A stretch of DNA of 64,000 nt from Trichosphaerium sp. ATCC 40318 (taxonomy: Eukaryota; Protista; Tubulinea), in assembly GCA_038496445.1 (NCBI GenBank), contig JALMLS010000505.1, positions 1 through 64,000 on the forward strand, written 5' to 3'. Each line of letters begins with the position of its first letter. Position 1 is the stretch's first letter. Below are positions 4,002-48,196 of this stretch, piece by piece. Under the pieces are notes generated by a model. It saw only the letters and a list, made by a program, of their open reading frames with translations. It did not search any database and was not told the origin of the DNA. Position numbers and translations under genes: made by a program.

Positions 4002-4931
4002 TGCTAATTTTGGGAACTCGCTTTTTCTTTATTCTTTACACCACAAACTAACGTTTTCAGGGTTTTTAGTGCAATAAACGTCGTTTAAAGGTACTTTGTA
4101 TACACTTGTTCATATTTTGGTACCATAATCCTTGTTTTAGATTATAACGCTTCTATTGCTGTTTAAGCACCGTTTATAACAGATACTGGATTGATTAATG
4201 TGTTTGTGAGCAATGAAGCTCAGTTGACGCTTTTTTAGGAAAGTCTTAAAAAAAAACGCCAAAAAACAAGTAAAAAAGTAAATAATTTATTCCACATTTA
4301 GAACGTAACAATAGAGCCATTCATTCCAAAGGTACATTCACACAGGATAAAGCATTGATATGAGAGGTGTTAACCGCTTACAAAAATCGGCCCTATTACG
4401 GCACCTCGAGTGCCAAGTGATTGAAAACTATGGTGGTAGAATATTAACACCCGTAACAACCCTTGAAAACTTCATTTTCTCTCCAAAACTTTTTCTTTTT
4501 CCACTTTTCACTTTTTCTTTTTTTTCAAATTCACATCTCGGATGTAATGTAATTCGCACAAGTGCGCTGTAGTGTGTTCATGTACAAATATACACGACAT
4601 CAGTGTGCTATTGATAGCCACTAAGACGTTGTCTTTCCTCCCAAGCAATCGCGTATTAGTTGTCTAGCTGGCGCAACGGGTATTCTAAACCAAGTAACGA
4701 ATTTTTTTTCTTCCAAGCCTTGGAAAATATGTTCCAGGATACAGATTAAAGCTCTCCAAGTGGTCAAAAAAACTGTTGTAAAGGCAATTGCGTTCTTGTA
4801 ACAAATCAGTAAAAAACACAGAACCAGAACCGTAATGCAAATTACAATAACACTTCACTGAAAAAAATCTTGTATCAAGTAACACTGACTTAACACTGCT
4901 TTGTGATAAACCTCAAGAGTGACAACACGTC

Positions 4932-7900
4932 ATGACAGAATCACAGAGTGACAAAACCCAACATTTAGAGCGGGAAGAACCAACCAACAACAACCATCTC
5001 CACATAATTGAAATTGTGTTTTCTTTTGCAGGTTTGCAATCCTTGGTAAGCAAATAGTTGACCAAGCATAGCAACAAATGGCTATGCTCAAGTTGTATCA
5101 ATGTTAATTAATGCCAATGCCAATATTGATGCTGTTGATAAATATGGAGACACACCTTTAATTTGTGCAGGTAACATGATATGATGAAATACAACATGTA
5201 CCATATCTCACTGCTGTATTATTTAGCACAAGAAGGGCGCAATGAAGTTGTATCAATGTTAATTAATGCCAATGCCAATATTGATGCTGTTGATGACGAT
5301 GGAAAGACACCTTTAATTTGCGCAGGTAACATGAAATGATGAAATACAACATGTACCACATCTCACTGCTGTATTATTTAGCACAAGAAGGGTACACTGA
5401 AGTTGTATCTCTGTTAATTAATGCCAATGCCAATATTGACGCTGTTGATAAAGATGGAAACACAGCTTTAATTCGCGCAGGTAACATGATATGATGAAAT
5501 ACAACATGTACCATATCTCACTGCTGTATTATTTAGCATGGTTTGGATACAATGAAGTTGTATCAATGTTAATTAATGCCGATGCCAATATTGATGCTGT
5601 TGATGAAGATGGAGACACACCTTTAATTTATACAGGTAACATGAAAGATGAAATACAACATGTACCACATCTCACTGCTGTATTATTTAGCACAAGAAGG
5701 GTACACTGAAGTTGTATCTCTGTTAATTAATGCCGATGCCAATATTGATGCTGTTGATAAAGATGGAGAGACAGCTTTAATTCGTGCAGGTAACATGATA
5801 TGATGAAATACAACATGTACCATATCTCACTGCTGTATTATTTAGCACAAGAAGGGCGCAATGAAGTTGTATCAATGTTAATTAATGCCGATGCCAATAT
5901 TGATGCTGTTGATGAAGATGGAAACACAGCTTTAATTCGCGCAGGTAACATGATATGATGAAATACAACATGTACCACATCTCACTGCTGTATTATTTAG
6001 CACAAGAAGGGCGCAATGAAGTTGTATCTCTGTTAATTAATGCCAATGCCAATATTGATGCTGTTGATGACGATGGAGACACACCTTTAATTTATACAGG
6101 TAACATGAAAGATGAAATACAACATGTACCATATCTCACTGCTGTATTATTTAGCACAAGAAGGGTACACTGAAGTTGTATCTCTGTTAATTAATGCCAA
6201 TGCCAATACTGATGCTGTTGATACAGATGGAAAGACACCTTTAATTCATGCAGGTAACATGATAAGATGAAATACAACATGTACCACATCTCACTGCTGT
6301 ATTATTTAGCACTAAAAGGACGCAATGAAGTTGTATCAATGTTAATTAATGCCAATGCCAATATTGATGCTGTTGATGAAGATGGAAAGACAGCTTTAAT
6401 TTGCGCAGGTAACATGATATGATGAAATACAACATGTACCATATCTCACTGCTGTATTATTTAGCATGTCGTGGACACAATGAAGTTGTATCAATGTTAA
6501 TTAATGCCAAAGCCAATATTGATGCTGTTGATAAATATGGAAACACAGCTTTAATTCATGCAGGTAACATGATATGATGAAATACAACATGTACCATATC
6601 TCACTGCTGTATTATTTAGCATGGTTTGGATACAATGAAGTTGTATCAATGTTAATTAATGCCAATGCCAATATTGATGCTGTTGATAAAGATGGAAAGA
6701 CACCTTTAATTCACGCAGGTAACATGATATGATGAAATACAACATGTACATATCTCACTGCTGTATTATTTAGCATGGTGTGGATACAATGAAGTTGTAT
6801 CAATGCTGATAGAAGTAAATGCAAATATTGATGCTGTTGATAAAGATGGAAACACAGCTTTAATTCGTGCAGGTAACATGATATGATGAAATACAACATG
6901 TACCATATCTCACTGCTGTATTATTTAGCATGTCGTGGACACAATGAAGTTGTATCAATGTTAATTAATGCCAATGCCAATATTGATGCTGTTGATAAAG
7001 GTGGAAACACAGCTTTAATTAAAGCGGGTAATGTCATATCTAGCCATGATAATGTTCAATATTATTGTAGCAATAAATGGTGATTTTGCATGTGTATCAA
7101 TGCTGATAGAAGTAAATGCAAATATTGATGCTGTTGATAATGATGGAAACACAGCTTTAATTCGTGCAGGTAACATGATATGATGAAATACAACATGTAC
7201 CATATCTCACTGCTGTATTATTTAGCGCTAAAAGGACACAATGAAGTTGTATCTCTGTTAATTAATGCCGATGCCAATATTGATGCTGTTGATAAAGATG
7301 GAAAGACAGCTTTAATTCGTGCAGGTAACATGATATGATGAAATACAACATGTACCATATCTCACTGCTGTATTATTTAGCGCTAAAAGGACACAATGAA
7401 GTTGTATCTCTGTTAATTAATGCCGATGCCAATACTGATGCTGTTGATAAAGATGGAAAGACACCTTTAATTCACGCAGGTAACATGATATGATGAAATA
7501 CAACATGTACCATATCTCACTGCTGTATTATTTAGCACTAAAAGGACACAATGAAGTTGTATCAATGTTAATTAATGCCAACGCCAATATTGATGCTGTT
7601 GATGAAGATGGAAAGACAGCTTTAATTTGCGCAGGTAACATGATATGATGAAATACAACATGTACCATATCTCACTGCTGTATTATTTAGCATGGTGTGG
7701 ATACAATGAAGTTGTATCAATGCTGATAGAAGTAAATGCAAATATTGATGCTGTTGATAAAGATGGAAGCACACCTTTAATTTATGCAGGTAACATGATA
7801 TGATGAAATACAACATGTACCATATCTCACTGCTGTATTATTTAGCATGTCGTGGACACAATGGAGTTGTATCAATGTTAATTAATGCCGATGCCAATAT

Positions 7901-10685
7901 TGATGCTGTTGATGAAGGTGGAAACACAGCTTTAATTAAAGCGGGTAATGTCATATCTAGCCATGATAATGTTCAATATTATTGTAGCAATAAATGGCGA
8001 TTTTGCATGTGTATCAATGCTGATAGAAGTAAATGCAAATATTGATGCTGTTGATAATGATGGAAACTCAGCTTTACATTGTTCAGGTTGCATCAAAAGA
8101 GATACTGCAAGTTTAACTAATGTTACTATTTAGTACAAAGAGGAAAGCATGAAATTATACTAATATTACTTAAAGCACATTTAAATAAGGACGTTGGTGA
8201 TGAAAATAGAAACAATGCTTATTTAGGTATGTTGCAATTTCACATTTGTTTGAAACAAACAACAATATTTAACAGTTGGTTTTAGTTGTACCAGATAACA
8301 AAAAGTGGCAAGGTTGTCTTTTATTGTTATTTAAACAAGTGATATCAAATACTCCAGCATCTGTTGAAGCGTTTGTAGCTTTTTTAAAACTCTGTCCAAA
8401 TGGAAAACAATGCCATTCACTGTGGAAATCTTGTTCATCCTTTGTGTCCTCCACAAACGACATATTGAAAATGCAAATGACACATGGCAACAAAGCATAC
8501 TTCAAGCAGTGGGAACAAGATCTTAAGCATCCTAAAAAATGGCTTCGGTACTTGGTATGCTACCTTTGAAAATGCTGTATTTGTTTTAATCCTTACAACC
8601 TTCAGCCAACGCGTTCTTATTTTAAACTGGCAATGGAAAAAGGTGTTTGTTATTTAATTTGTGCTGTATTAGATCCCAAAGTTGCTCTGTCTGCAGTACG
8701 AATCCGTAAATCATATGTAAACTTTGTAACTGTTTGCTTACTAGAACTTCTGGAAACAAGATGGAGAATTAATGCAAGGCATCTTGCATGATATGCCTAA
8801 TGATGCATGGGGTAATACAAATCATGTTGAATACTTAGAAGATGCCAATGCAGGTAACAAGGTCACTGTTTTGACAAGTACTAAATGTACTACAAAGGAG
8901 TTTTGGCTAAAAACTCATGGGATCTAAATCCAAGATTGCATTTTGCAAATAGTTGGGACAGATCTAAAAGCACGTACGTTCAAACTTATATTACCATTTG
9001 GGGGTTTTTTTTTAGTTTATTTTCAAAAAAGGGGCATTGATTTAAAGGCGACAGACTACAGAACACTGAACCTGCTTGATACAAATGACAAAGTTGCTGT
9101 CAGAGAATTCAACATACTCAAACAACAGATGTCTAAAATGCACGGCTATGACAATTACAATATTGTTGAAGCGACTCTTGTTTACAATGATATCTTGAAT
9201 GAAAACTTTGGTCGATTCAACAAAATACTACAACACAGACATAAGTACATTTATTCTAAATTAGCCCGTTTTAATGTGCCTAATTGTGTACTTGTAGAGG
9301 ACTTCCCAAGTTGTTTAAAAAGCAGACTTGGAAAAATAGTGTCCACAAAAAGTACAAAGAGAGTGTTTACAATGCCACACCAATGCAAAAAGATTCAAGT
9401 ACCGATAACAAAGATACTTCAAAACACGAGGTAATGTTCAGTAGAAATACCTATTTGTACTAACCCCTACATGTAGTTACCAGCGATATTGATGGCTCAC
9501 GGAACAAGTGAAAAGGCAGCTTACAGTATTGTACAAGCTGGTTTCGGGACTGTGAGCGCCTTGGATGCTGGTTACTATGGCCAAGGGATATACTTCACAG
9601 TACGCAAATAACAACGTCACATTTTTATTCATTGTTTTTACAACAGCGGAGTATAAAATATGCCTGTTCGTACGATAAGGGAGTAAAGGGAGTGAAAACA
9701 CTTATTTTGAGTCTTGTCACTCCTGGCAATGTATATCCTGTAAGTAAACAATTTTATTGTCGTACCTAATTTACAAAAAGGTACACCCAGACGACAAGTT
9801 AAGAGGACAGCCAATAAAACCAGGCTACCAAAGTCATTATGTATTGGTAGATAAATTAGGTAGAGCGTTCAAAGAAGATAAGCTTGCCAACGCAGTATAC
9901 GATGAGCTTGTTGTTGCTCAAGGTACGTTATAAAAATGAAATAGTATCATTGTGATTTATTTTATCTTGAAATCAGATAATCAAGCTGTTGCTCGTTACA
10001 TCATCAAAGTTGTACTGAAAGATAGTCAAATTAAAAAACGAATCAAAACAAAAAAATCCAAGAAAGGTGGCAAAAAGACAAAGAAACAAAACAAAGAAGA
10101 AAACGACGGTTCGGATGATGATCTTTCTGACGATGATGATAATTTTATTTCTAACCGGTAATTACATCACAAAATATCTTCATCTTTTTTTTAACCTTTT
10201 GTACTAGAAAACTATGGGCTGCTCATGAAGACTCAACTGATGACCAACAATCAACTAATAATGATGTCAATCTCGAAATAGAATTGCAGAAAGCAAACCA
10301 CGAGATGAACAAACTAAAGAATAGCAATATGAACATGAAGCACCGCAATATGAATATGAAGCAGCTTCTTGATAATTTACAACAAACCAATACAAACCAA
10401 CAACAACTCAATGCAAACTTAGAGCGAGACAACTTAATTAAACAACGCATCAAATTAACAGAAAGTGTCAATGACCTGAAGCAAGACAATGTCAAATTAG
10501 CACAAAGCGATGCCATGAGTAAAGAAAGTATCAAAACCCTGAAGAAAGATAACGTCAACTTATCCAAAAGCAATGCCAACCTGGAGCTAGATAATAGCAA
10601 CATAGAAAAAAGTTTAACTAGGCTGCAAGAGAGAAACACCATTCTACTTGCCAAAATAGCCCAACTTGAAAATACAAACAAGTAG
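4932..10685 (+). CDS. Ankyrin-repeat array (20 one-repeat exons) + linker + PARP-like ADP-ribosyltransferase domain + C-terminal coiled coil
   Basis: ATG at 4932, exon 1 4932-5031, then 20 exons of 99 bp (5072-8086) splicing in frame to ankyrin repeats (e.g. AQEGRNEVVSMLINANANIDAVDDDGKTPLICA), cap exon 8134-8226. ART motifs: MAHGT (~9492-9506), DAGYYGQGIYFT, SIKYACSY, GYQSHY, YDELVV (E at 9904). Lys-rich/acidic tract, then a heptad-rich tail ending in TAG at 10685. Confidence 0.9.
5072..8086 (+). repeat. Tandem array of ~155-bp exon+intron units (99-bp ankyrin exon + 55-56-nt intron; two 43-nt variant introns)
   Basis: 17 copies of intron A (GTAACATGATATGATGAAATACAACATGTACCATATCTCACTGCTGTATTATTTAG) with only a few variable positions, plus 2 identical copies of intron B (7028-7070, 7945-7987). 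Confidence 0.97.
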
Positions 10686-11523
10686 CTGGTACAATTAATT
10701 AGAGCTATTGTCATGATAATCACCATGTACTTAGATAGAATAAAACATACTTAACTACAACTCGTACCTTGCACCTTTTCTTGTAACAACAGTACTTAGG
10801 TCATTTGAGGTACAGAACATCTATAGGCCAGCTATCTCCTACATACGCTCATTTGAGCTCTAGCCGACAGCTATAGTTAGTTTTGGTGTATGTCAATATT
10901 TATTATTACAACTGCCTCTTGTCACCTAGTACTAAGTGTTTAGCCTTTTGAACAAACAAATCTTTTAATGATGCTATAATTCAGATTATAAACCAGAAAA
11001 TTCTAATTTCGAAACTATGTCATTTACTCTGAATATTGCTGAAATATTAAAGTCATATGTAACAAGTCGGTACAGCAATAAAACAAAGAAAAAGACATAA
11101 AACAGAGATGGTATGGAAACTGAAATAGTGAAAATTACGCACTTTTATAAATGCATTGTTTCAAACCAAACTTACAATATTGAGAAATTTATGTTGTCTA
11201 TGTCTTCTGATATCGTTTTTTGAGTTTAGTCAACTCACATTCCACGTTAGGCTACTATGGAGTGCTAGCTAGGTACGTATTTATAGCGTTTATAATACTT
11301 TGACCAAGGTGTCGATAGCCCAGTGGGTCATGGGCAGGTTCGTCTTGGGTTGCCGGTTCAAATCATAGTCAAAACCTTCGAAATACTATTTTTAATATGT
11401 TGTGTTATGCCAAAGTGCGTAATATTATCTGTTGTTGAATCCCAAAGCACTGAGGCTGACAGTGATAGCTCTCAATGATACGTGATCTTTCAAAAAAAAG
11501 GGTGAACTCTTCGCTCAAAACGC

Positions 11524-11830
11524 AGCGCTGTTTATATCGCGATATAGAAAATACAGAAAAAAATAAGAATTAACATTTATGGCAAACACGGTCAAAACCT
11601 CAGTTCTGATTTTTTCCACAACAGATCTACATGCCAATGCGCGTGTTTTGTATTTTCTAAGAGAAAAAGATTTGTAAACATTCCTTTTTTGGCTCAAAAA
11701 AACCAGAAAGAAGTCATAATATCTGGCTTGAAAAATCGAGTTTTGACCTGAGTCTTTGCACACTAATGCGACATGTATGTGCGTATAAACCTGCAATAAA
11801 TAATCTTTCTCCGCTTGGTTTTCATTGGTT
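11524..11830 (+). repeat. Diverged copy of the dispersed repeat at 14160-14456
   Basis: Shares CATTTATGGCAA.CACGGTCAA, ACATG.CAAT.CGCGT and TCTTTGCACACTAATGC.ACATGTATG with the reverse complement of 14160-14456. Confidence 0.7.
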
Positions 11831-14159: not shown

Positions 14160-14620
14160 GCGTTTATGAAAACCAGAGAGAGAAATTATTTTTATTGTCG
14201 GATTCTATGCACTCATACATGTTGCATTAGTGTGCAAAGAATCAGGGTCAAAATCGGTCTGGTAAGCGAGAAATTTTGACTTTTTTGTTGATTTTTTGCT
14301 CCAAAAACGAAGACTTTTGTACCTTATGAAAAAATAGAAAATACGCGTATTGACATGTTGGTGTAGTGTGTAAAAAATCATGGATGAAATTGACCGTGGT
14401 TGCCATAAATGCTACCTTTCTTATTTTTTTCTGGAAATTTTTTCGTATCAACCGCTAGGTACAAAAGTCTTCGTTTTTGGAGCAAAAAATCAACAAAAAA
14501 GTCAAAATTTCTCGCTTACCAGACCGATTTTGACCCTGATTCTTTGCACACTAATGCAACATGTATGAGTGCATAGAATCCGACAATAAAAATAATTTCT
14601 CTGTCTGTATTCATAAACGC
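14160..14620. mobile_element. Foldback/MITE-like element with ~164-bp near-perfect inverted arms and a ~132-bp spacer
   Basis: 14160-14324 is the reverse complement of 14457-14620 apart from a few differences near the outer ends. Non-coding; no clear TSD. Confidence 0.85.
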
Positions 14621-15331: not shown

Positions 15332-16003
15332 TTACTCTTGTTTTCCAATCCGAATGTGGTTTCCATCCTTTATGTATACTATTGATGTAATAACCTTGAA
15401 CATGAAAACATTTTCATAACAATATAGCATGTATGCTCCTTCTCGTTTTCCATCTACATAGTTATAGCAGCTATAAAGAAAGCCATAATAATGCCACCTC
15501 CATGACTTTCCTTCTTTTTTGCCATTGATATAATAACACCTCTTACTTAACTGGCCGTACTCGTACCATGACTTGCTATCTCCTTCTAGTTCACCGTTGG
15601 AATACTCACATTGCTTCTTCAATTGACCATTTTGGTGCCACTCCTGATACTCTCCTTCATGTCTATCATTGACATAGTGACCTATCTTATGTATTTGGCC
15701 ATTTTCATGCCACATCTTGCACTCTCCATGACATTGGCCATGTCTCCAATTTTTTTCAGCCTTTGACAGATGTTACTGACTACTGCTATTTTTTAGTTTT
15801 GTTACCTTGCGTAGACCTGTTAATCGCCTAATTTGCCATTTTCCATGTTTTTGTAACTTATCATCAAATCTTGTTGTCATTGCTGTGTATTTTGTTAATA
15901 AAGGCCATATTTGATACAATTTAGAGTCTAAATCGATAATATCCAGATGTATCTCTACTGGAAGATGTAATAAACTTATACTACTTGATTTTGAGTTATC
16001 CAT
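15332..16003 (-). CDS. F-box-like + MORN-variant (MORN_2/YwqK-like) repeat protein, short paralogue
   Basis: N-terminus LLHLPVEIHLDII..W. A 45-nt GTAACA...AAAG intron removes the apparent TAA at 15773-15775. Repeats of the form WHENGQ...YxNG..EG. The 3' end may continue through a GTAAGT donor. Confidence 0.75.
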
Positions 16004-18325: not shown

Positions 18326-21631
<3,306 letters not shown>

Positions 21632-28022: not shown

Positions 28023-29776
28023 TCAAAACATGTTTGAAAAATGTTTCATAAATAATATTACTGTTTTGTTGTATCTCGTAATTATACCTTCAGCATACGT
28101 TCTATGTGCACACAAGTCACCACTACAATCCCATTCCCTATACTCTCCATGAAGCTCACCCTTATCATTGTAAAAGCAAAGAATCTTTAAGTAACCACTG
28201 GAATTCCGATGCCATTCCTTGTACTCATTGTTTAGCTTGCCATTTAGATAATAGCACTTCTTTTTAAGTTGGTTGTTGCATTCATTGTACTCTCCATTAA
28301 GCTCTCCTTCATTGTTATAAAAGCAATGAATGTGTAAATTACCATTGGAATGCCATTCCTTGTACTCCTTGTTCAACTGACCATTTACATAAAAGCAATA
28401 TTTAGATAATATACCTGTATCGAGCCACTCCTTATACTTTCCATGTAAAAGACCATTTACATAAGTACACTGTTTGCTTAACACACCATTCTCATATTCT
28501 TCCTTGTACTTCTTGTTCAACACGCCTTTGATGTAAAAGCATCTCTTACGCAATCTACCAGTTCTATACCAATCCTTATACTCTCCATCTAGGTTACCTT
28601 GACTGTCATAGCAACAATGTTTGTAAAGTACGCCATCCCAATACCACTCCTTGTATTCCTTGAACAAAACACCATTGAAATGAAAGCCTTGCTTACGTAA
28701 TCCCCCCTCACTATTCCACTCCTTGTACTTTCCGTTCAATTGTCCGTTATTGGAGTAATAACATTGTTTACGCAAGACGCTATTACCATGATACTCCTTA
28801 TACTCTCCTGTCAACATACCTTTATTGTCATAAAAGCAATGGATCATTAGCTTGTCTCGCTGGTACCATTTCTTGAACTCTCCGGTGAGATCACCATTTA
28901 CATAATAACAACGTTGTTGTAAGTAGCGTAAAGCACCACCAAAGAGGGTATACCACTCTTTATACTCACCCTCTAATTCACCATTAACATACGAACAGTC
29001 TTTCCATAATTGACCACTTCTTTTCATTTCTTTGTATTCCCCGTGTAGTTTACCTTTGACATAATGACATTGTTTACGCAATTCACTACTATTGGTATGC
29101 CACTCTTTGTACTCACCCTCTAATTTACCATTAACATACGAACAGTCTTTCCATAATTGACCATTTCTTTTCATTTCTTTGTATTCCCCGTGTAGTTTAC
29201 CTTTGATATAATGACATTGTTTACGCAATTCACTATTGGTATGCCACTCTTTGTACTCACCGTTGTATTTGCCAGCAACACGCCAACAGTGTATGCAACG
29301 TCGCCCATTTTTATACCATGTTTTAAACTCACCATCGTATTTGCCATCAACATACCAAGAGTGTACCTTAAGTTTCCCATTAGCATGCCACTGTTGGTAC
29401 TCTCCTTTCAAATTATCATTGCTGTACAAGCAGTGTTTTTTAAGTCGTCCGTTTCCAAACCACTCCTTGGACTCTCCATGGTGCTTACCATGTTTCCAAG
29501 AACCTTTCTGGAGAAGCTTCCACTTTTTCTTGTACAGGCCGTGCTTCTTCCACACACCATGTTTCCTGAGCTTGGAATCGAACCTTGTCGTCAAAGCCAC
29601 GTGTTTTGATAGTAATGGCTATTTGAGATAAGTTTCCGTATCCAAATCGATAATACAAAGGTGTAACTCCACAGGAAGGGTAAAAAGAGGACAAGACTCA
29701 GAGATATCTGTATTTCTCTAATAAGATCATTAAAAACTGAACTAAACAAACTGAATCGATGTACCACAACTTCCAT
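28023..29776 (-). pseudogene. F-box-like + ~20 MORN-variant repeats; nonsense codon in the F-box
   Basis: MEVV|47-nt intron|RNTDISESCPLFTLPVELHLCIIDLDTETYLK*PLL aligns to the paralogue's LLHLPVEIHLDIIDLDSKLYQIWPLL, with TAG at 29619-29621 replacing TGG. The downstream 525 codons (GEYKEWHxNG repeats) are intronless and open. Confidence 0.75.
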
Positions 29777-30964: not shown

Positions 30965-31639
30965 GCTTGTTGTTAAGAACACTTTATGGGAATGTATTGT
31001 GTGCACAAAGTGTCACATAAAATGTTCAGCATAGATAAAATTTGTTTCTTTGCAAAAAGTATTCTCTTACGCTTTTACATGTAACTAAGTGCTCTGTTCA
31101 GCCGGTTGAGTACAATGTGAACTTTAAATTTAACAATTGACTCAGAGACCTAGAAGAAAGCCTAAGAAAGCAGCAAGGATGGGAAAAAACAAGAAGGTTA
31201 TAACGTGACAAAGGGAAGACTAAGATTGTAAGAACAGTGAGTTACTATTAACAGAATAACTGTCAACAAAATACGTTCATTAAATGTACTTCCGGTAAAA
31301 TATTAACTCCTGCGAACTTGTCAACCATTCCGTTTTGAAACGTGTATCACTTGATTTGTACAGTTGAATGTTTCACCGCTATCCATGTGAGTATCTTATT
31401 GTAACAAATACTACAAACAATGAAGAGGAACCAGTTAATCTCATCTCACTACAGCAATAAACTCACTTCACTTAGCAAGAAACGGAGACGGCGAAAAAGT
31501 TTCAATATTGATAAGTCAGCGCTGATGTTAACGGCGTACAGCTTTACTATCCAGTAACGTAGCAAAATATCTATAAAACGAATAAACCGAGCAGCCTAGT
31601 AAAATTATTGCCTAATGTACAAGGAGGCTTTATTGTGAG

Positions 31640-32588
31640 TTACTTGTTAAACCCAAACCAAGATTGTACGGTCAAGAAGAACGAAGTACTATTTTCTGAA
31701 GGTATAATAACTCTCTCACTTGTAGATTCTTCTAAGTGGCGCCCTGCCTTTATATGCATATCTTCAGCACGGCTGATCATATCATCAAACATCTCAAAAA
31801 CGCCAGTGCCCTGTTAAAAGAAAAACAATCAGAAAAGGGACAAACAACAGAAGGAACGTTTTCTTATTTTTTTCTCGTACTTCTTTTGCACTGACTTCAA
31901 AATATGAAACACCCCAAAAGTCTGCCAGCTCACGTCCTTCTTTGGTTGATACATCTCGTTTATCTTTTAAATCTATTTTGTTGCCTACAATGGCAATACA
32001 ACATTGCTGATCTTTTGTTAACTCCATCACCTTTTCATACTTTGCTACTCTTTCAAAAGTGTTTCGTTGTGTGACATCAAACACAACAAATGCTATGTGG
32101 CTTCCTCTAACAAACGATCTGGCTTAAAATTTACATTAGCATATTAGCAGGAGGTAATAATATTACTTAGATTTGATAAACCCCGCTCCCTTCCAGCAGT
32201 ACTAAAAAAAGTCAACATTTTCTTATGTTTTCTGTCACGTGTTTTTAGCAGGAAAGACGATACGTACTCCCATATTTGTAACTTTATGTCTTTGATCACT
32301 TTCCCTTGTAGGTGTTTAATGTACTAAAACAAGATGAGATTCTAACTAAACGACCACAAAAAGAATGTAACATACAAACTCTACACCAATAGTCATCCTG
32401 CTATCTGAGAATTTATTTTCATTGTATCTTCTAATAATTGATGATTTACCCACTCGTAGACCTGTTTGATAGTAAACTAGCGAGAATAAGTTAAAAACAG
32501 TACCAGTGTCGCCCAACAGTATTATTTTGGTTGGAACAGTCTTCTTTCTATATTTAGGAGCGGTATTATTTGCTGTTCCCTTCGGCAT
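31640..32588 (-). CDS. Atypical Rab-like GTPase (paralogue A)
   Basis: GDTGVGKSS, TIGVEF, WDTAGRER, GNKID, EVSAK; ends QSWFGFNK* with no prenylation Cys. Confidence 0.85.
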
Positions 32589-33910: not shown

Positions 33911-36900
33911 TTACAAGTGCTTATCACCAGCTTCTGCATCACTAGTCTTATAAAACATAATCTCTTTCCAATTGCCGATAATACCTTTATCATAAAAATT
34001 GCTGAATTTCCCGTTTTCGTCTTTAAGGTAGTCATAACGGTACCAATTAGCATTTTCGTTTGTAGTGAATCCACGAGAAATCAAATACATGTTGCTCAAT
34101 GTTAACGGCGTTAAAAATGCCAGCATCATATTGTCCCTGTTATAACACATAAGTATCTTTAGACTGTAACAAGATTTAAAAAATGGTCAGTCTGATAGCT
34201 GTTTTAATGCCTAAAGAAGGCGAAAAATCCAACAACAGAAAAAGAAATGTATTACATTACATTATTCGTCCTTTCGTTTCAAACACCGAAAGCGTACCAG
34301 ATATACAATGATAATAACCAAGGGTGGGTTCCATACACATGAGCTAGATTACCCCAGAATGTACCAGGAAGTCCATCAACGCAAAATAAGTCTAGAAGAA
34401 AGCATAAGCTTAAATCAAGAAATCAAATACCAAAACTGTCGTACAAATATAATTATATCTCGCTAGAACAAGAAGACAAGTCGCCATACATGCCATAAAA
34501 TATATGAAATGAAAGTGGTTACGAATACCAACACAATTGTTTATCCAAGGGCAATGATGATCCATACGATAAACACATCTGTTAAAAAATTATTAGATAT
34601 TCTTCAAAAAAAAATTTGCTGGTGTAGTTGTACTTGTTGCATATACGACAATGCTTTGATCTGACACTCTTTTTAATCTATACACCAACTATTAGTATTT
34701 TAAGACAAAGAAAGAAAAAAAGTTGCGAACGGGAGTCAAGGATGGGTAACGTACAAGGCAAGTTGAACAAAATTGCTTTGGAATAGTCTTTTGATTAAAA
34801 TGTTCTTCGATACCCTGGAAAGACATAATATAAGAAATGAGGTGTTAATACCTATCACATACTATGGAATCGTTTTGGGAACCACATATCCAACCAGGAT
34901 TATCATTTACAGCCTTAGAAAGAGTGAGATAAAAAACGTCAGGTTTTTAGCGATGTTACATGACAATAATGTACCTTGTAATACGCGTAACATCCATAAA
35001 AAAATCCAACATTACCAGGTAATATAAACCATAATTCTTGTTGTACTTCAGGGCCAGTGAATTGTTAAGACCAAATAAATACTACAACAGTTTCGAAAAC
35101 GAAAAAAAAAAATCAGGTGAAAATAAGAAGAATGACTTTACAGGTTGTTATGCCAATTATCAAAACATTCAGTAGGATACGAGTGATAGTGTAGTACCAG
35201 AAATTAAAACAAGATATTGCTAGAGTAACTGCCGCCCATACTACCAACGTAGGGTTCTTTTTAAGAATAAAATCGTCACTAGTAAACAGCCGAAACAAAA
35301 TATAAAACCAAATCATCATACCTAAAACAGTACATTTGAGAGAGATGTACATTTAATATTTAATGTATAAAATAAACCAAATAGTTCTTGTTGATATAAA
35401 ACAAACAATAATGAATAAATAGTAATTGCTAATAGCTGAGAACTGAAGAAAGTGCAAAAAGATGCCTAAAAAAGAGATTTTCGACTTTTTGTTTTGGAAC
35501 CATTCAACGAAAAGCGTACAACCACAAGCCAAGTAAAAGTTATAGCTGAAAGCTATAAGCATAACTACAAGCCAAAATCCGGCTGAAAAAGCATATCCCC
35601 ATTCACGCTATAAGAAGAAGAATAAGCAAAAAAAATACAAAAGAAAATTCGTTTCCCAGTTTCTTGTGTACTTACAACATATCTGGGTGCCTTTAAGTAT
35701 CGTAAAATATGTTCTATACGATCACTAACATCCCTGTTATTGGCTTCAGTAGCAATATCGAACGCTGTGTTATTATCATTGTCTCTGATTTCGAGGTGCG
35801 TTCTTTCGATTTCTGATGAATGCAGTATCGTATAAGCTACATCCTCATCACCCGTTTTGGCGCATAAGTGTAATGGTGTCTTTCCTGAGAGTTTTTAGCA
35901 CATTTTAGAGTATTACACAGAGAAAAATAAGATAGAGCAATGGTGAAAGCATTGAGATAACATAAAGTTAGATTATCTGTAGAAAAAATATCCGAACAAA
36001 CAATTAATACCTTCATTATCTTGCATGGTGAACACTGTATAATGCTTAGCCAACCTTTCAAATAAATCTTCGTGACCCAAAGCAGCCCAGTGTATAGGCT
36101 ACAACGAATAAGGTTTGAATACAAAAACGAGAAACAGAAGTGACGCACAAGTCTACCCATTTGATCTTTGGAAAATAATAAAGATTTAACAGTTGGATCG
36201 TACAACAAGTATGTAACAACTAAAGTGTGCCCTCCAATAACTGCAGTATGTAATACAGTCCTTCCACGAGCATCTGTCAACGATTAGTTTGCCATATAAG
36301 TCCATCATCTCGTTCAAATAAAAAAGTTTTACTACCTGTCTTGTTAAGATCAGCGCCTCTCTTTATGAGATACTCTACTGCGCTCACACAACCGCCTGTA
36401 ACAGCTAGATGAAGTGGTGTTTCTTTATATTCCTCAGTAGTTACGTTTACATCAACTAACGTATAATTAGAGCACGTTAATACGCAATAAGAAAAATAAG
36501 AAAACTCGTCCACGTTGCGTACTGTTTTTTGACACAAGGAAATTAAGCACATGCATATTTCCGCGTAGTGCTGCATGATGGATTGGATGGTAGCCGCTGT
36601 AACGAATTAATATTTGTGTAATGTTACAAGTAGGTTTTGCAAGGAAAATGGCCTTGAGCAAACTGCTGAATCTCGTTTTTGATGTGTATTTGGTTCGTAA
36701 GCAATAATACCCTTTGTCAGGAGTAGACAGACTCTGTCCATTGTGTAGCGCCTCTTCACATGCCTCCAAGGTGTTTAACTTATAATCTACGCCATTTAGA
36801 TAACTAAAAATCCAGATTGTACAATGTAGTACCATCTTTGAAAATTTCATCTTTGTTTTGCGTAGTTTTCCATATTAGCTCCCATCGTGTACGTTTGAGT

Positions 36901-46874: not shown

Positions 46875-47160
46875 ATCGCCATTTGTATGTTTGTGCTTTA
46901 AATATTTATAGCCTTGTTATTTAATATTACGGTATTCCTTGAAACGTTAAAGTACAAAACTATGCTGGTAAAAGCCTCACAAAGACTATACAGTATTAAT
47001 ATTCATTTAGAAAGAAACAACTTGTTATTTGTCAACATCTCCTTTTTTATGCACTCTTGACAGTTTTTTTATGCCAGTTGCTGTAACATACAAACTCTGC
47101 TTGTTAATTGTAAAGGTACGCTGGATCTCCTGAATATAAAAGGAGGTTTATTGTTTTATG

Positions 47161-48196
47161 TTACTTATTTAATCCAAACCAAGATTGAATGGCTGAGAAA
47201 AATGAGCCATGGTTTTCTGAAGTTGTACCATCTTTCTCAGAAGGTATTTTCTCTAAATGGCGTCCTGCCTTCACACAAACATCTTCAGCACGGCTGATCA
47301 TTTCATCAAACATCTCAAAAACGCCAGTGCCCTGTTAAAAGAAAATCAGAAAAGGGAAGAATACAGAAAGAACGTTTTCTTATTTTTTTCTCGTACTTCT
47401 TTTGCACTGACTTCAAAATATGAAACACCCCAAAAGTCTGCCAACTCGCGTCCTTCTTTTGTCGATACCTCTCGTTTATCTTTTAAATCTATTTTGTTGC
47501 CTACAATGGCAATACAACATTGTTGATCTTTTGTTAACTCCATCACCTTTTCATACTTTGCTACTCTTTCAAACGTGTTTCGTTGTGTGACGTCAAACAC
47601 AACAAATGCTATGTGGCTTCCTCTACTGTATACTATAAATTAAGTTAATATGTATTGTATACTAGAAGGTACTACCAAGAGTGGATATTCCCCGCTCTCG
47701 TCCAGAAGTACTAAAAAAAAATAAGGTTTCGTTCACCTGGATTTTAAACTAATACGTACTCCCATATTTGAAGTTTGATATCATTAATCACTTTCCCTTT
47801 TGTGTGTTTAAAGAACTAACATCGCGTTTAGATTATATTCCGGGCTCTATTATGACAATTGTTTGAAGGACAACAAGAACATGAAGATGTAACGTGTTGC
47901 AAAATAAAAAGTAGGTTCCAAGCACGTGTATTTTTTTTTGTTCCCGTGGAAGCAATTTCAAACTACAACGTACGAAATCTACGCCAATGTTCAATCGCCT
48001 ATCCGAGAATGTGTTTTCAACATATCTTCTTATGATCGATGATTTACCTGTCCGCATACCTGGTGGATAGTCAACAACATTGTAATAAAGCTACTTAACT
48101 TCTAAACACAGTACCTGTATCGCCTAAAAGTACTAGTTTTGTTCCGACTGTCTTTTGTCCATAATTTCGTGGTGTATTAGCGGTTCCCTTCGGCAT
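47161..48196 (-). CDS. Atypical Rab-like GTPase (paralogue B)
   Basis: MPKGTAN start, GKSSIIRRY, NIGVDF, WDTSGRER; central exon nearly identical to paralogue A; ends QSWFGLNK*. Confidence 0.85.

Follow-up and report, generated by a model that had tools for sequence, protein, structure and literature searches.

A one-repeat-per-exon ankyrin array joined to a PARP-type ADP-ribosyltransferase domain in the protist Trichosphaerium sp.

Immune-like recognition systems in free-living protists are, to our knowledge, almost unknown. The locus described here raises the question of what kind of protein is encoded when a long run of equal-sized exons, each specifying one ankyrin repeat, precedes a PARP-like catalytic region, and whether its repeats serve a fixed or a diversifying recognition surface. 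We addressed this within a window of 64,000 nucleotides, the whole stretch of DNA analysed, from contig JALMLS010000505.1 of Trichosphaerium sp. ATCC 40318. A hand-built GT-AG model yielded a 33-exon gene on the plus strand, running from an ATG at 4932 to a TAG at 10683-10685 and comprising 4080 nt that encode 1359 amino acids (Table 1). The terminal TAG is the only in-frame stop in this reading frame, an in-frame TGA lies 12 nt 5' of the ATG, and GT-AG borders were found at 32/32 introns. The first 22 introns, i.e. every intron in the ankyrin part, are in phase 1. The C-terminal 628 residues (732-1359) were colinear with a cDNA-derived relative, P0001, at 57% identity and free of gaps at the exon junctions. 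The ANK-PARP gene is real, intact, intron-rich and protist. The 40-nt intron 5032-5071, for which no relative offers support, would join exon 1 to the array in phase 1. A first-pass annotation had proposed that the array is spliced in frame to a linker, a PARP-like ART domain and a coiled coil, and the 33-exon model, which is open throughout, bears this out. The protein encoded in the window was absent from the matches of a word-based search among proteins of 430-1367 aa.

Table 1. Features of the ANK-PARP gene, in window coordinates.
Feature	Position	Strand	Evidence
Exon 1, start codon and N-terminal cap-like segment	4932..5031, 100 nt	+	sequence
Array of 20 exons x 99 nt, each coding for a single 33-aa ankyrin repeat, phase 1-1	5072..8086	+	TRF, gene model, Pfam Ank
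Three-unit higher-order block, copy 1 (WCGYN, CRGHN, 43-nt intron, INGDF units)	6774..7169	+	self-comparison with 7691-8086
Three-unit higher-order block, copy 2	7691..8086	+	self-comparison with 6774-7169
Exon 22, degenerate C-terminal capping ankyrin-like repeat	8134..8226, 93 nt	+	sequence
Linker, four exons, ~180 aa, helical	8286-8554, 8606-8695, 8745-8853, 8898-8973	+	colinear with P0001 residues 2-165
PARP catalytic domain, five exons	9032-9244, 9298-9430, 9477-9599, 9647-9739, 9781-9922	+	Pfam, colinear relatives, AF2 fold
Last strand of PARP domain, then lysine-rich and acidic low-complexity segments	9977..10157	+	sequence, P0001 alignment
Last exon, single long helix with leucine-zipper-like heptads, then TAG	10208..10685	+	TRF, composition, AF2

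The gene model also confirmed an earlier claim of 20 successive 99-bp exons (exons 2-21), each encoding one repeat and all different, as 20/20 are distinct at both the nucleotide and the protein level. Analysis with TRF delimited a tandem unit of 155 nt (99 + 56) present in 18.5 copies across 5090-7937. Seventeen array introns measure 55-56 nt, eleven of them being identical, while two introns of 43 nt (7028-7070 and 7945-7987) are identical to each other. Translations of single exons (32 aa) passed the gathering scores of both Ank PF00023 (23.9-24.1 bits, cut-off 21.1) and Ank_4 PF13637 (24.2-26.6 bits, cut-off 22.7). Exon 22 alone gave no Pfam match, and the intron that follows it (8227-8285) occupies the position of an intron retained in transcript L001, the contig of the relative P0001, on which spliced ankyrin repeats and the PARP portion occur together. 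No paralogue or spare ankyrin cassette was detected elsewhere in the 64-kb window, with 36/36 tblastn ankyrin matches falling inside 4900-8300. A functional intron RNA was considered and rejected, the 56-nt intron showing no special fold (z = +0.76) and no Rfam match.

Downstream of the array, the linker exons matched no known Pfam family, searching a protein atlas with them yielded no informative match, and AF2 confidence was low over this region. When exons were scored piecewise, PF00644 matched one window exon at 19.2 bits (E 9e-4), below the cut-off of 26.7, and single-exon PDB searches returned nothing useful. The colinear relatives P0001 and P0002 (57-58% identical) scored 30.9 and 36.5 bits, respectively, and passed this gathering cut-off. 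The AF2 model of P0001 matched the folds of tankyrase, PARP1 and PARP12 with TM scores by target of 0.6-0.72; Foldseek ranked tankyrase first, with PARP1, PARP12 and PARP4 equally close, and sequence profiles of the catalytic domain favoured PARP12/10/ZAP and also matched PARP4. The H-Y-E triad is intact, with H in HGTS and Y in GIYFT (both in exon 9477-9599) and E in DELVV (exon 9781-9922), and these residues align with the triad positions of PARP12, whose third residue is I. GYYGQGIYFT, KPGYQSHY and DELVV constitute the subfamily motifs of the domain. The product of the last exon contains neither Pro nor Gly in 160 aa and has a 7-residue periodicity, with N/I/L at heptad position a and L at position d; TRF periods in this exon were 21 and 63 nt, and AF2 placed a helix over residues 3-157 (155 residues) at a pLDDT of 92. 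The coiled coil annotated earlier is therefore upheld as a predicted single helix with leucine-zipper heptads, which would mediate oligomerisation. An architecture consisting of a recognition-type repeat array, an ADP-ribosyltransferase and a predicted oligomerising helix is supported.

We then compared the repeats with one another. Divergence was 0.014 among the 17 introns of 55-56 nt versus 0.172 among exons, making the introns 12-fold more alike. Mean repeat identity was 73%, rising to 86% at framework positions and falling to 26% at seven variable positions, and most of the between-repeat variation is concentrated in these seven codons, numbers 2, 3, 5, 6, 24, 27 and 32 of the unit. In the canonical register, most of the seven correspond to residues of the ankyrin binding face, where the repeats mainly vary. 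By our mapping to the designed-ankyrin register, three of the seven (10, 16 and 17) fall outside the classic randomised binding positions. The two copies of the three-unit block differ at 13 positions, all exonic (12 nonsynonymous and 1 synonymous), and at 0/99 intron bases (Fisher p = 0.0098). Nearest-neighbour repeat pairs likewise showed 58 nonsynonymous versus 12 synonymous changes. Over all repeats pN/pS was 0.79, i.e. below 1, and for the variable codons only it was 1.10. A PHI test among the repeats (p < 0.0002; 278/780 site pairs incompatible) indicates, at the level of sequence comparison, recombination and mosaicism within the array. The repeats diverge far more at synonymous sites (0.17-0.2) than in their introns, a contrast that positive selection by itself does not account for and that calls for intron homogenisation together with linkage to selected sites. 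The earlier proposal that the array diversifies by repeat shuffling stands in part: recombination, mosaicism and the nonsynonymous excess in the recent duplicate speak for it, but differences between repeats of one protein are no proof of change through time and are equally expected of a fixed, specific binding surface. DGR-like A-mutagenesis was rejected as a source of the variation, the consensus base being A at just 23/48 variable sites.

The initial description of the gene's surroundings as a transposon-rich accessory region was not supported. The neighbouring ORFs tested were MORN, DEAH-helicase, ANK, LRR and PhyH-like, and no reverse transcriptase and no significant transposase match was found among them. 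The sole transposon-family match near the gene, TnpV, scored 16.3 bits, below the cut-off of 27, and just a few MITE-like or dispersed repeats were detected in the window. A viral origin was also rejected, given that IMG/VR held no relative and that the gene contains 32 spliceosomal introns.

The reading toward which we lean, with modest confidence, is that of a tankyrase-like enzyme whose ankyrin array recruits the targets and presents a recognition surface that is maintained in a diverse state. The protein would be cytoplasmic, with a solenoid of ~21 ankyrin repeats that may bind a protein target and a C-terminal PARP domain that would use NAD+ to ADP-ribosylate the bound target or itself. 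The 155-residue leucine-zipper-type helix would pair or oligomerise the protein, in the role of the tankyrase SAM. Blocks of one unit (155 nt) and of three units (~465 nt) may have been duplicated in tandem to build up the array, with short tracts still being exchanged between repeats, and such exchange would homogenise the introns and framework codons. At some seven codons in each repeat, the majority of them on the canonical binding face, selection would preserve or promote differences and thereby keep the recognition surface diverse. This surface is probably evolving fast, and we suggest tentatively that its targets might themselves be fast-evolving or non-self. A further-reaching version, which we consider unlikely, envisages a family of protist innate recognition enzymes in which the homogenised 56-nt phase-1 introns serve as universal joints. 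Unequal exchange, perhaps along with exon skipping, would then always combine ankyrin cassettes anew in frame and supply a repertoire of binding surfaces through which ADP-ribosylation is aimed at pathogen or non-self proteins. Such a family would be the ANK-PARP counterpart of fungal highly-conserved-repeat NLRs and of brown-algal exon-shuffled receptors.

Parts of this arrangement have counterparts elsewhere. In the animal ankyrin genes ANK1/2/3, many repeats are single 99-bp exons that encode one 33-aa repeat each; their repeats and introns are old and diverged, and they are not known to carry such an enzyme domain. Tankyrase (PARP5a/b, Clade 4) shares with the gene product an N-terminal ankyrin array, a C-terminal H-Y-E PARP domain and an oligomerisation element, and its fold is among the best matches in the PDB. 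However, the product is not a tankyrase, because it has no SAM, WGR or PRD domain: Pfam detected no SAM in the window's linker exons or in P0001 and P0002, and no WGR or PRD in the window exons or in these two relatives. Whereas tankyrase has its SAM between array and PARP domain, the window gene has a C-terminal leucine-zipper helix instead; tankyrase repeats form five ARC clusters, while those described here are near-identical cassettes, and by profile the catalytic sequence is closer to PARP12/10/ZAP. True tankyrases are reportedly found in animals only (PMC2964712). Clade 3 mono-ARTs (PARP10/12/ZAP-like), which are characterised by a third triad residue other than Glu and by WWE, CCCH or macro accessory domains, were the best sequence matches, but the third triad residue here is Glu; neither WWE nor macro domains were detected in the window exons or in P0001 and P0002, and the single CCCH-like match was weak (E 0.019). 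The same combination of ANK and PARP occurs in Clade 1A ANK-WGR-PRD-PARP proteins (Dictyostelium ADPRT3, C. elegans PME-5) and in Naegleria/Monosiga fusions, although the Clade 1A proteins contain WGR and PRD, neither of which is present here, and the catalytic subfamily of the window gene differs from that of these fusions. ANK+PARP fusions arose several times independently (PMC2964712, PMC4245714).

Fungal NLRs contain highly conserved ankyrin arrays with hypervariable sites (Dyrka et al. 2014, PMC4986451), and the Ectocarpus genome encodes candidate receptors of the LRR-ROCO and NB-ARC-TPR types with one repeat per exon (Zambounis et al. 2012, PMC3341825); both had been cited as precedents in the first-pass annotation, and the literature bears them out. 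Fungal NLR/STAND proteins (HET-E/NWD) combine near-identical repeats, hypervariable binding-face positions and a separate effector domain with traces of concerted evolution and of reshuffled repeats; the window gene would resemble them in these respects, its variable positions being placed on the binding face by the canonical register. In contrast to them, Pfam matched neither NACHT nor NB-ARC in the exons of the window gene or in its relatives, the effector here is C-terminal and a PARP, and each repeat has its own exon, which is not so in fungal NLR genes. The fungal criterion is a repeat identity of >85%, with hypervariable sites on the concave face, against a repeat identity of 73% overall and 86% in the framework here. 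The Ectocarpus receptors resemble the gene in giving each repeat its own exon, of equal length and frame-neutral, and in their evidence of shuffling or diversification. Their repeats are LRR or TPR rather than ANK, the signalling module here is a PARP, and the window introns, unlike theirs, are phase 1, tiny (56 nt) and homogenised. Spare, inactivated or inverted cassette exons of the Ectocarpus type were not found by tblastn in the 43-56-nt introns or nearby. The claim that this architecture was undescribed has to be narrowed to the full combination, which we did not find in the literature searched, and does not extend to its parts, since ANK+PARP fusions, conserved ankyrin arrays and exon-per-repeat receptors are all known.

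Other explanations have to be weighed against a diverse recognition surface. The gene might encode a tankyrase-like enzyme that has a housekeeping role and an unchanging set of partners. Purifying selection would then hold the particular surface residues of each repeat, with gene conversion permitted nowhere but in introns and framework codons; introns would be conserved and exons diverse, just as observed, although no diversification was in progress. Such an enzyme would agree with a pN/pS among repeats below or near 1 and with the tankyrase logic of ankyrin repeats, H-Y-E PARP domain and oligomerisation. We nevertheless think it improbable, given the absence of SAM, WGR and PRD, the 12-to-1 nonsynonymous excess in the recent duplicate, and a family whose nearest relatives are just 55-58% identical and which is sparse in libraries of 1.8 and 5.8 billion proteins.

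Since all 99-nt exons are symmetric, their skipping would always be in frame, and the array could instead be a splicing cassette system that yields many array lengths or combinations, with intron identity selected for equal splice-site strength. The phase-1 position of 22/22 introns of the ankyrin part and the identity of 11/17 introns of 55-56 nt favour this idea, and brown-algal exon-per-repeat ROCO genes are reported to be alternatively spliced (PMC11378527). Equal splice-site strength, however, needs no identity across the whole 56 nt, the intron has neither a special RNA fold nor an Rfam match, and seven contiguous ankyrin repeats are conventionally spliced in the relative's transcript L001, so that we regard a cassette system as very unlikely. 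That the array results from misassembly, or is a recent expansion that has no function and is now decaying, is hardly credible: although tandem arrays of 155-nt units are difficult to assemble, the array consists of 20 distinct in-frame units in a gene with an open reading frame and canonical borders at every intron, and ordered, unique units are not producible by collapse or mis-join.

With a recognition surface kept diverse as the favoured reading, the ANK-PARP gene is a small and testable example: its array, although natural, resembles designed ankyrin binders, has repeat boundaries that are exon boundaries, and is coupled to an enzyme whose activity is easily assayed. Should arrays prove to differ between strains or paralogues, fungal NLR repeats and the exon shuffling of brown algae would be joined by a third, independent way of diversifying repeat-based receptors, and ADP-ribosylation would be tied to recognition outside animals. 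The catalytic part also has a wider context. In other organisms the same PARP subtype is joined to LRR, ROC-COR, UBR, kinase, SH3-ANK and EGF/FG-GAP modules, LRR and ROC-COR being among those of a sensor-like kind, and its occurrence after LRR, ROC-COR, UBR and kinase modules suggests that it is a portable effector domain. Further members of the family were observed in Arcella and as ROCO- or ComC-like proteins.

A 155-nt tandem period extends over 5090-7937 of the window (18.5 copies, 88% matches), and reading the array as 99-nt exons separated by 55-56-nt GT-AG introns yields a single open frame. The full gene model, which was assembled manually, runs from an ATG at 4932 to a TAG at 10683-10685 and consists of 33 exons and 32 introns (4080 nt, 1359 aa, no internal stops); every intron has GT-AG ends and a length of 40-59 nt. 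One 33-aa ankyrin repeat is encoded by each of exons 2-21 (5072-8086), all of which measure exactly 99 nt, and phase 1 is maintained throughout introns 1-22. These 20 exons are preceded by an exon of 100 nt and followed by exon 22, a degenerate capping repeat of 93 nt; the first intron (40 nt) is the sole junction supported by frame logic alone. Single-exon translations exceeded the gathering scores of Pfam Ank and Ank_4. The exon count, coordinates and frame proposed in the first-pass annotation were therefore correct, and its claim of 20 mutually different repeats was borne out at both the nucleotide and protein levels.

We then searched 1.84 billion representative proteins with the 70-aa exon at 9033-9242. 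Two significant relatives of the C-terminal half were recovered, P0001 (590 aa) and P0002 (450 aa), which are transcript-like because both lie on short intron-less contigs from a single JGI sample. Model residues 732-1359 align end to end with P0001 at 57% identity, free of gaps at all ten exon junctions, thereby validating the modelled splicing for exon 23 and those after it. In L001, the contig carrying P0001, the PARP part is preceded by seven or more spliced ankyrin repeats, and the two parts are separated solely by a retained intron at the position of window intron 8227-8285; in a relative, therefore, they belong to one transcript. The retained intron (L001:700-805) contains an N run and splits the called genes into an ankyrin ORF and a PARP ORF. 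GC content is similar between the relatives' transcripts (37.7-38.2%) and the window coding sequence (36.7%), and DNA identity is 71-73%. These transcripts represent paralogues, or derive from a close relative, and do not originate from the window locus.

Pfam PARP was matched weakly by one window exon alone (E 9e-4), while P0001 (30.9) and P0002 (36.5) both pass the gathering score of 26.7; besides PARP, Pfam detected nothing in these two proteins, including SAM, WGR, PRD, WWE and macro domains. Family profiles matched the solved structures of PARP12, PARP10, ZAP and PARP4. An AF2 model of P0001:1-440, calculated from a 44-row alignment that included the window's PARP exons, gave pLDDT values of 85-95 for the PARP domain and matched structures of tankyrase 1/2, PARP1, PARP12 and PARP4 with probability 1.0 and TM by target of 0.6-0.72. 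An Atlas feature search was concordant with a PARP domain (score 0.95). The H-Y-E catalytic triad falls in the window exons within the motifs HGTS (H), GIYFT (Y) and DELVV (E); some family members carry Q instead of H. Pfam, the P0001 alignment, the AF2 fold and the triad thus uphold the proposal of an in-frame PARP-like ADP-ribosyltransferase domain. For the linker of ~180 aa, no recognisable family was found and the fold was of low confidence. The last exon encodes 160 residues with no Pro or Gly and has a 7-residue periodicity; tandem periods of 21 and 63 nt are found in its DNA. In its approximately nine heptads, position d is Leu and position a is Asn, Ile or Leu, and the exon product is predicted to form a single helix (residues 3-157, pLDDT 92), in agreement with the suggested coiled coil. 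An antisense ORF of 167 aa overlapping this exon is probably a by-product of periodic, low-complexity coding sequence.

Among the 17 array introns of 55-56 nt, which have a mean pairwise divergence of 0.014, 11 share one sequence, and the two 43-nt introns are likewise identical to each other, whereas the exons diverge by 0.172 and vary at 48 of 99 columns. Unit codons 2, 3, 5, 6, 24, 27 and 32 show 26% identity between repeats, compared with 86% for the remaining 26 codons. We take these seven to be positions 13, 14, 16, 17, 2, 5 and 10 of the designed-ankyrin register, where 2, 5, 13 and 14 are classic randomised binding positions and 10, 16 and 17 adjoin them in the inner helix and turn. 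Among repeats, pN/pS was 1.10 for the seven codons, 0.44 for the framework and 0.79 overall, and no general signal of positive selection is seen. Selection on amino acids alone is insufficient as a cause, since synonymous divergence (0.17-0.2) is 12 times intron divergence. The two copies of a three-unit duplication (6774-7169 and 7691-8086) differ at 13 sites, all exonic; 12 of the changes are nonsynonymous and 1 is synonymous, and none of the 99 intron bases differs (Fisher p = 0.0098, versus synonymous plus intron sites). Nearest-neighbour repeat pairs showed 58 nonsynonymous versus 12 synonymous differences.

Sub-exon blocks re-assort among repeats. Incompatibility was found for 278 of 780 informative site pairs, and near sites were more compatible than far ones (PHI-type permutation, p < 0.0002), which together indicate recombination or gene conversion among repeats and not recurrent mutation alone. 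All four combinations of two variable intron sites are present, so exchange has also occurred inside the 56-nt intron. The few variant introns are confined to the array's 5' half (5171-6309). Short-tract exchange would homogenise whatever selection permits, namely introns and framework, and differences at recognition codons would be kept along with tightly linked synonymous variants; we infer that this combination explains the contrast between introns and exons. The same pattern of homogenised introns and diverse exons has been classically described for MHC genes. The 56-nt intron gave no RNA structure signal (z = +0.76), and the array intron had no Rfam matches. Confinement of variation to adenines was rejected, as the variable sites are not limited to A.

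Relatives of the PARP subtype, which is recognised by the motifs GYYGQGIYFT, KPGYQSHY and DELVV, number 138 in contigs of JGI metagenomes, and none were found in IMG/VR. The subtype is placed C-terminally behind widely differing N-terminal modules: LRR (locus L031 and an Arcella protein), ROC-COR/Ras (proteins P0010, P0013, P0020), zf-UBR (P0018), kinase (P0019), ANK with or without SH3 (P0008, P0011, P0015, P0016, P0022) and giant EGF/FG-GAP proteins (loci L010, L024). P0023 is a further protein of the LRR/ROC-COR/zf-UBR/kinase/EGF group with this ending, and one named member comes from Arcella intermedia (Amoebozoa). Such varied recognition modules support, but do not prove, the sensor-effector idea; the subtype looks like a portable effector domain joined to recognition modules. 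An HMM made from the array's own repeats, which is insensitive to divergent ankyrins, was applied to 80 loci, and only in L053 may same-strand ankyrin repeats precede the PARP match; the matches in L033 and L066 lay either downstream of it or on the opposite strand. Near-identical repeats were absent from all ANK-PARP relatives examined.

The window gene is real and unusual. Fusions of ANK and PARP arose repeatedly, as in tankyrases, Clade 1A and the Naegleria, Monosiga and Dictyostelium cases (PMC2964712, PMC4245714), but the window gene lacks the SAM domain of tankyrases and the WGR and PRD domains of Clade 1A, and assignment to either failed. Its array behaves like the highly conserved ANK/TPR/WD repeats of fungal NLRs (PMC4986451), although it has no NOD domain, and resembles the exon-per-repeat receptors of Ectocarpus (PMC3341825), although no spare cassette exons were found. 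The gene joins a tankyrase-like design to repeat dynamics of the kind seen in fungal NLRs and Ectocarpus receptors, and its product may plausibly act as a diversifying recognition enzyme. The architecture had been put forward as undescribed. This does not apply to the ANK-PARP fusion itself; for an exon-per-ankyrin array joined to PARP, no description was found in the part of the literature covered by our search, which is weak evidence of absence.

Features overlapping or neighbouring the gene in the window
Feature	Position	Strand	Details
Antisense ORF	10223-10726	-	
Copy related to hairpin	11686-11787		102 nt, 77%; 2.4 kb upstream of hairpin
Near-perfect hairpin	14174-14607		two arms of 151 nt each with 99% complementarity, spaced by 132 nt
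MORN_2-repeat long ORF	15332-15715	-	E 1.4e-10
ORF fragments, DEAD/DEAH helicase and HA2 ratchet	19010-20951	-	weak, both under Pfam cut-offs
MORN_2-repeat long ORF	28023-29600	-	E 1.7e-22
147-nt tandem repeat within preceding ORF	28947-29261		95% identical
Dispersed repeat, ~0.7 kb	31630-32327 and 47151-47819		direct copies 15.5 kb apart, at most 95% identity over 276 nt
Two ORFs, weak ankyrin matches	35837-36850	-	

The description of the region as transposon-rich was unsupported. The tested neighbouring ORFs gave no significant transposase or reverse transcriptase match (one sub-threshold TnpV, 16.3 bits versus 27), and the only repeats seen in the window were the hairpin type and one dispersed repeat. 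The hairpin, which follows the gene closely on its 3' side, resembles a MITE or foldback element, and the dispersed repeat may be a transposon fragment or segmental duplication. The neighbouring ORFs examined encode MORN repeats, a DEAH-type helicase, another ANK protein, LRR and PhyH-like segments. The weak ankyrin matches suggest that the opposite strand carries a further ankyrin-repeat gene, which had no match to the array's repeats at E < 1e-3, and the helicase fragments suggest an ordinary DEAH-box helicase gene adjoining the locus.
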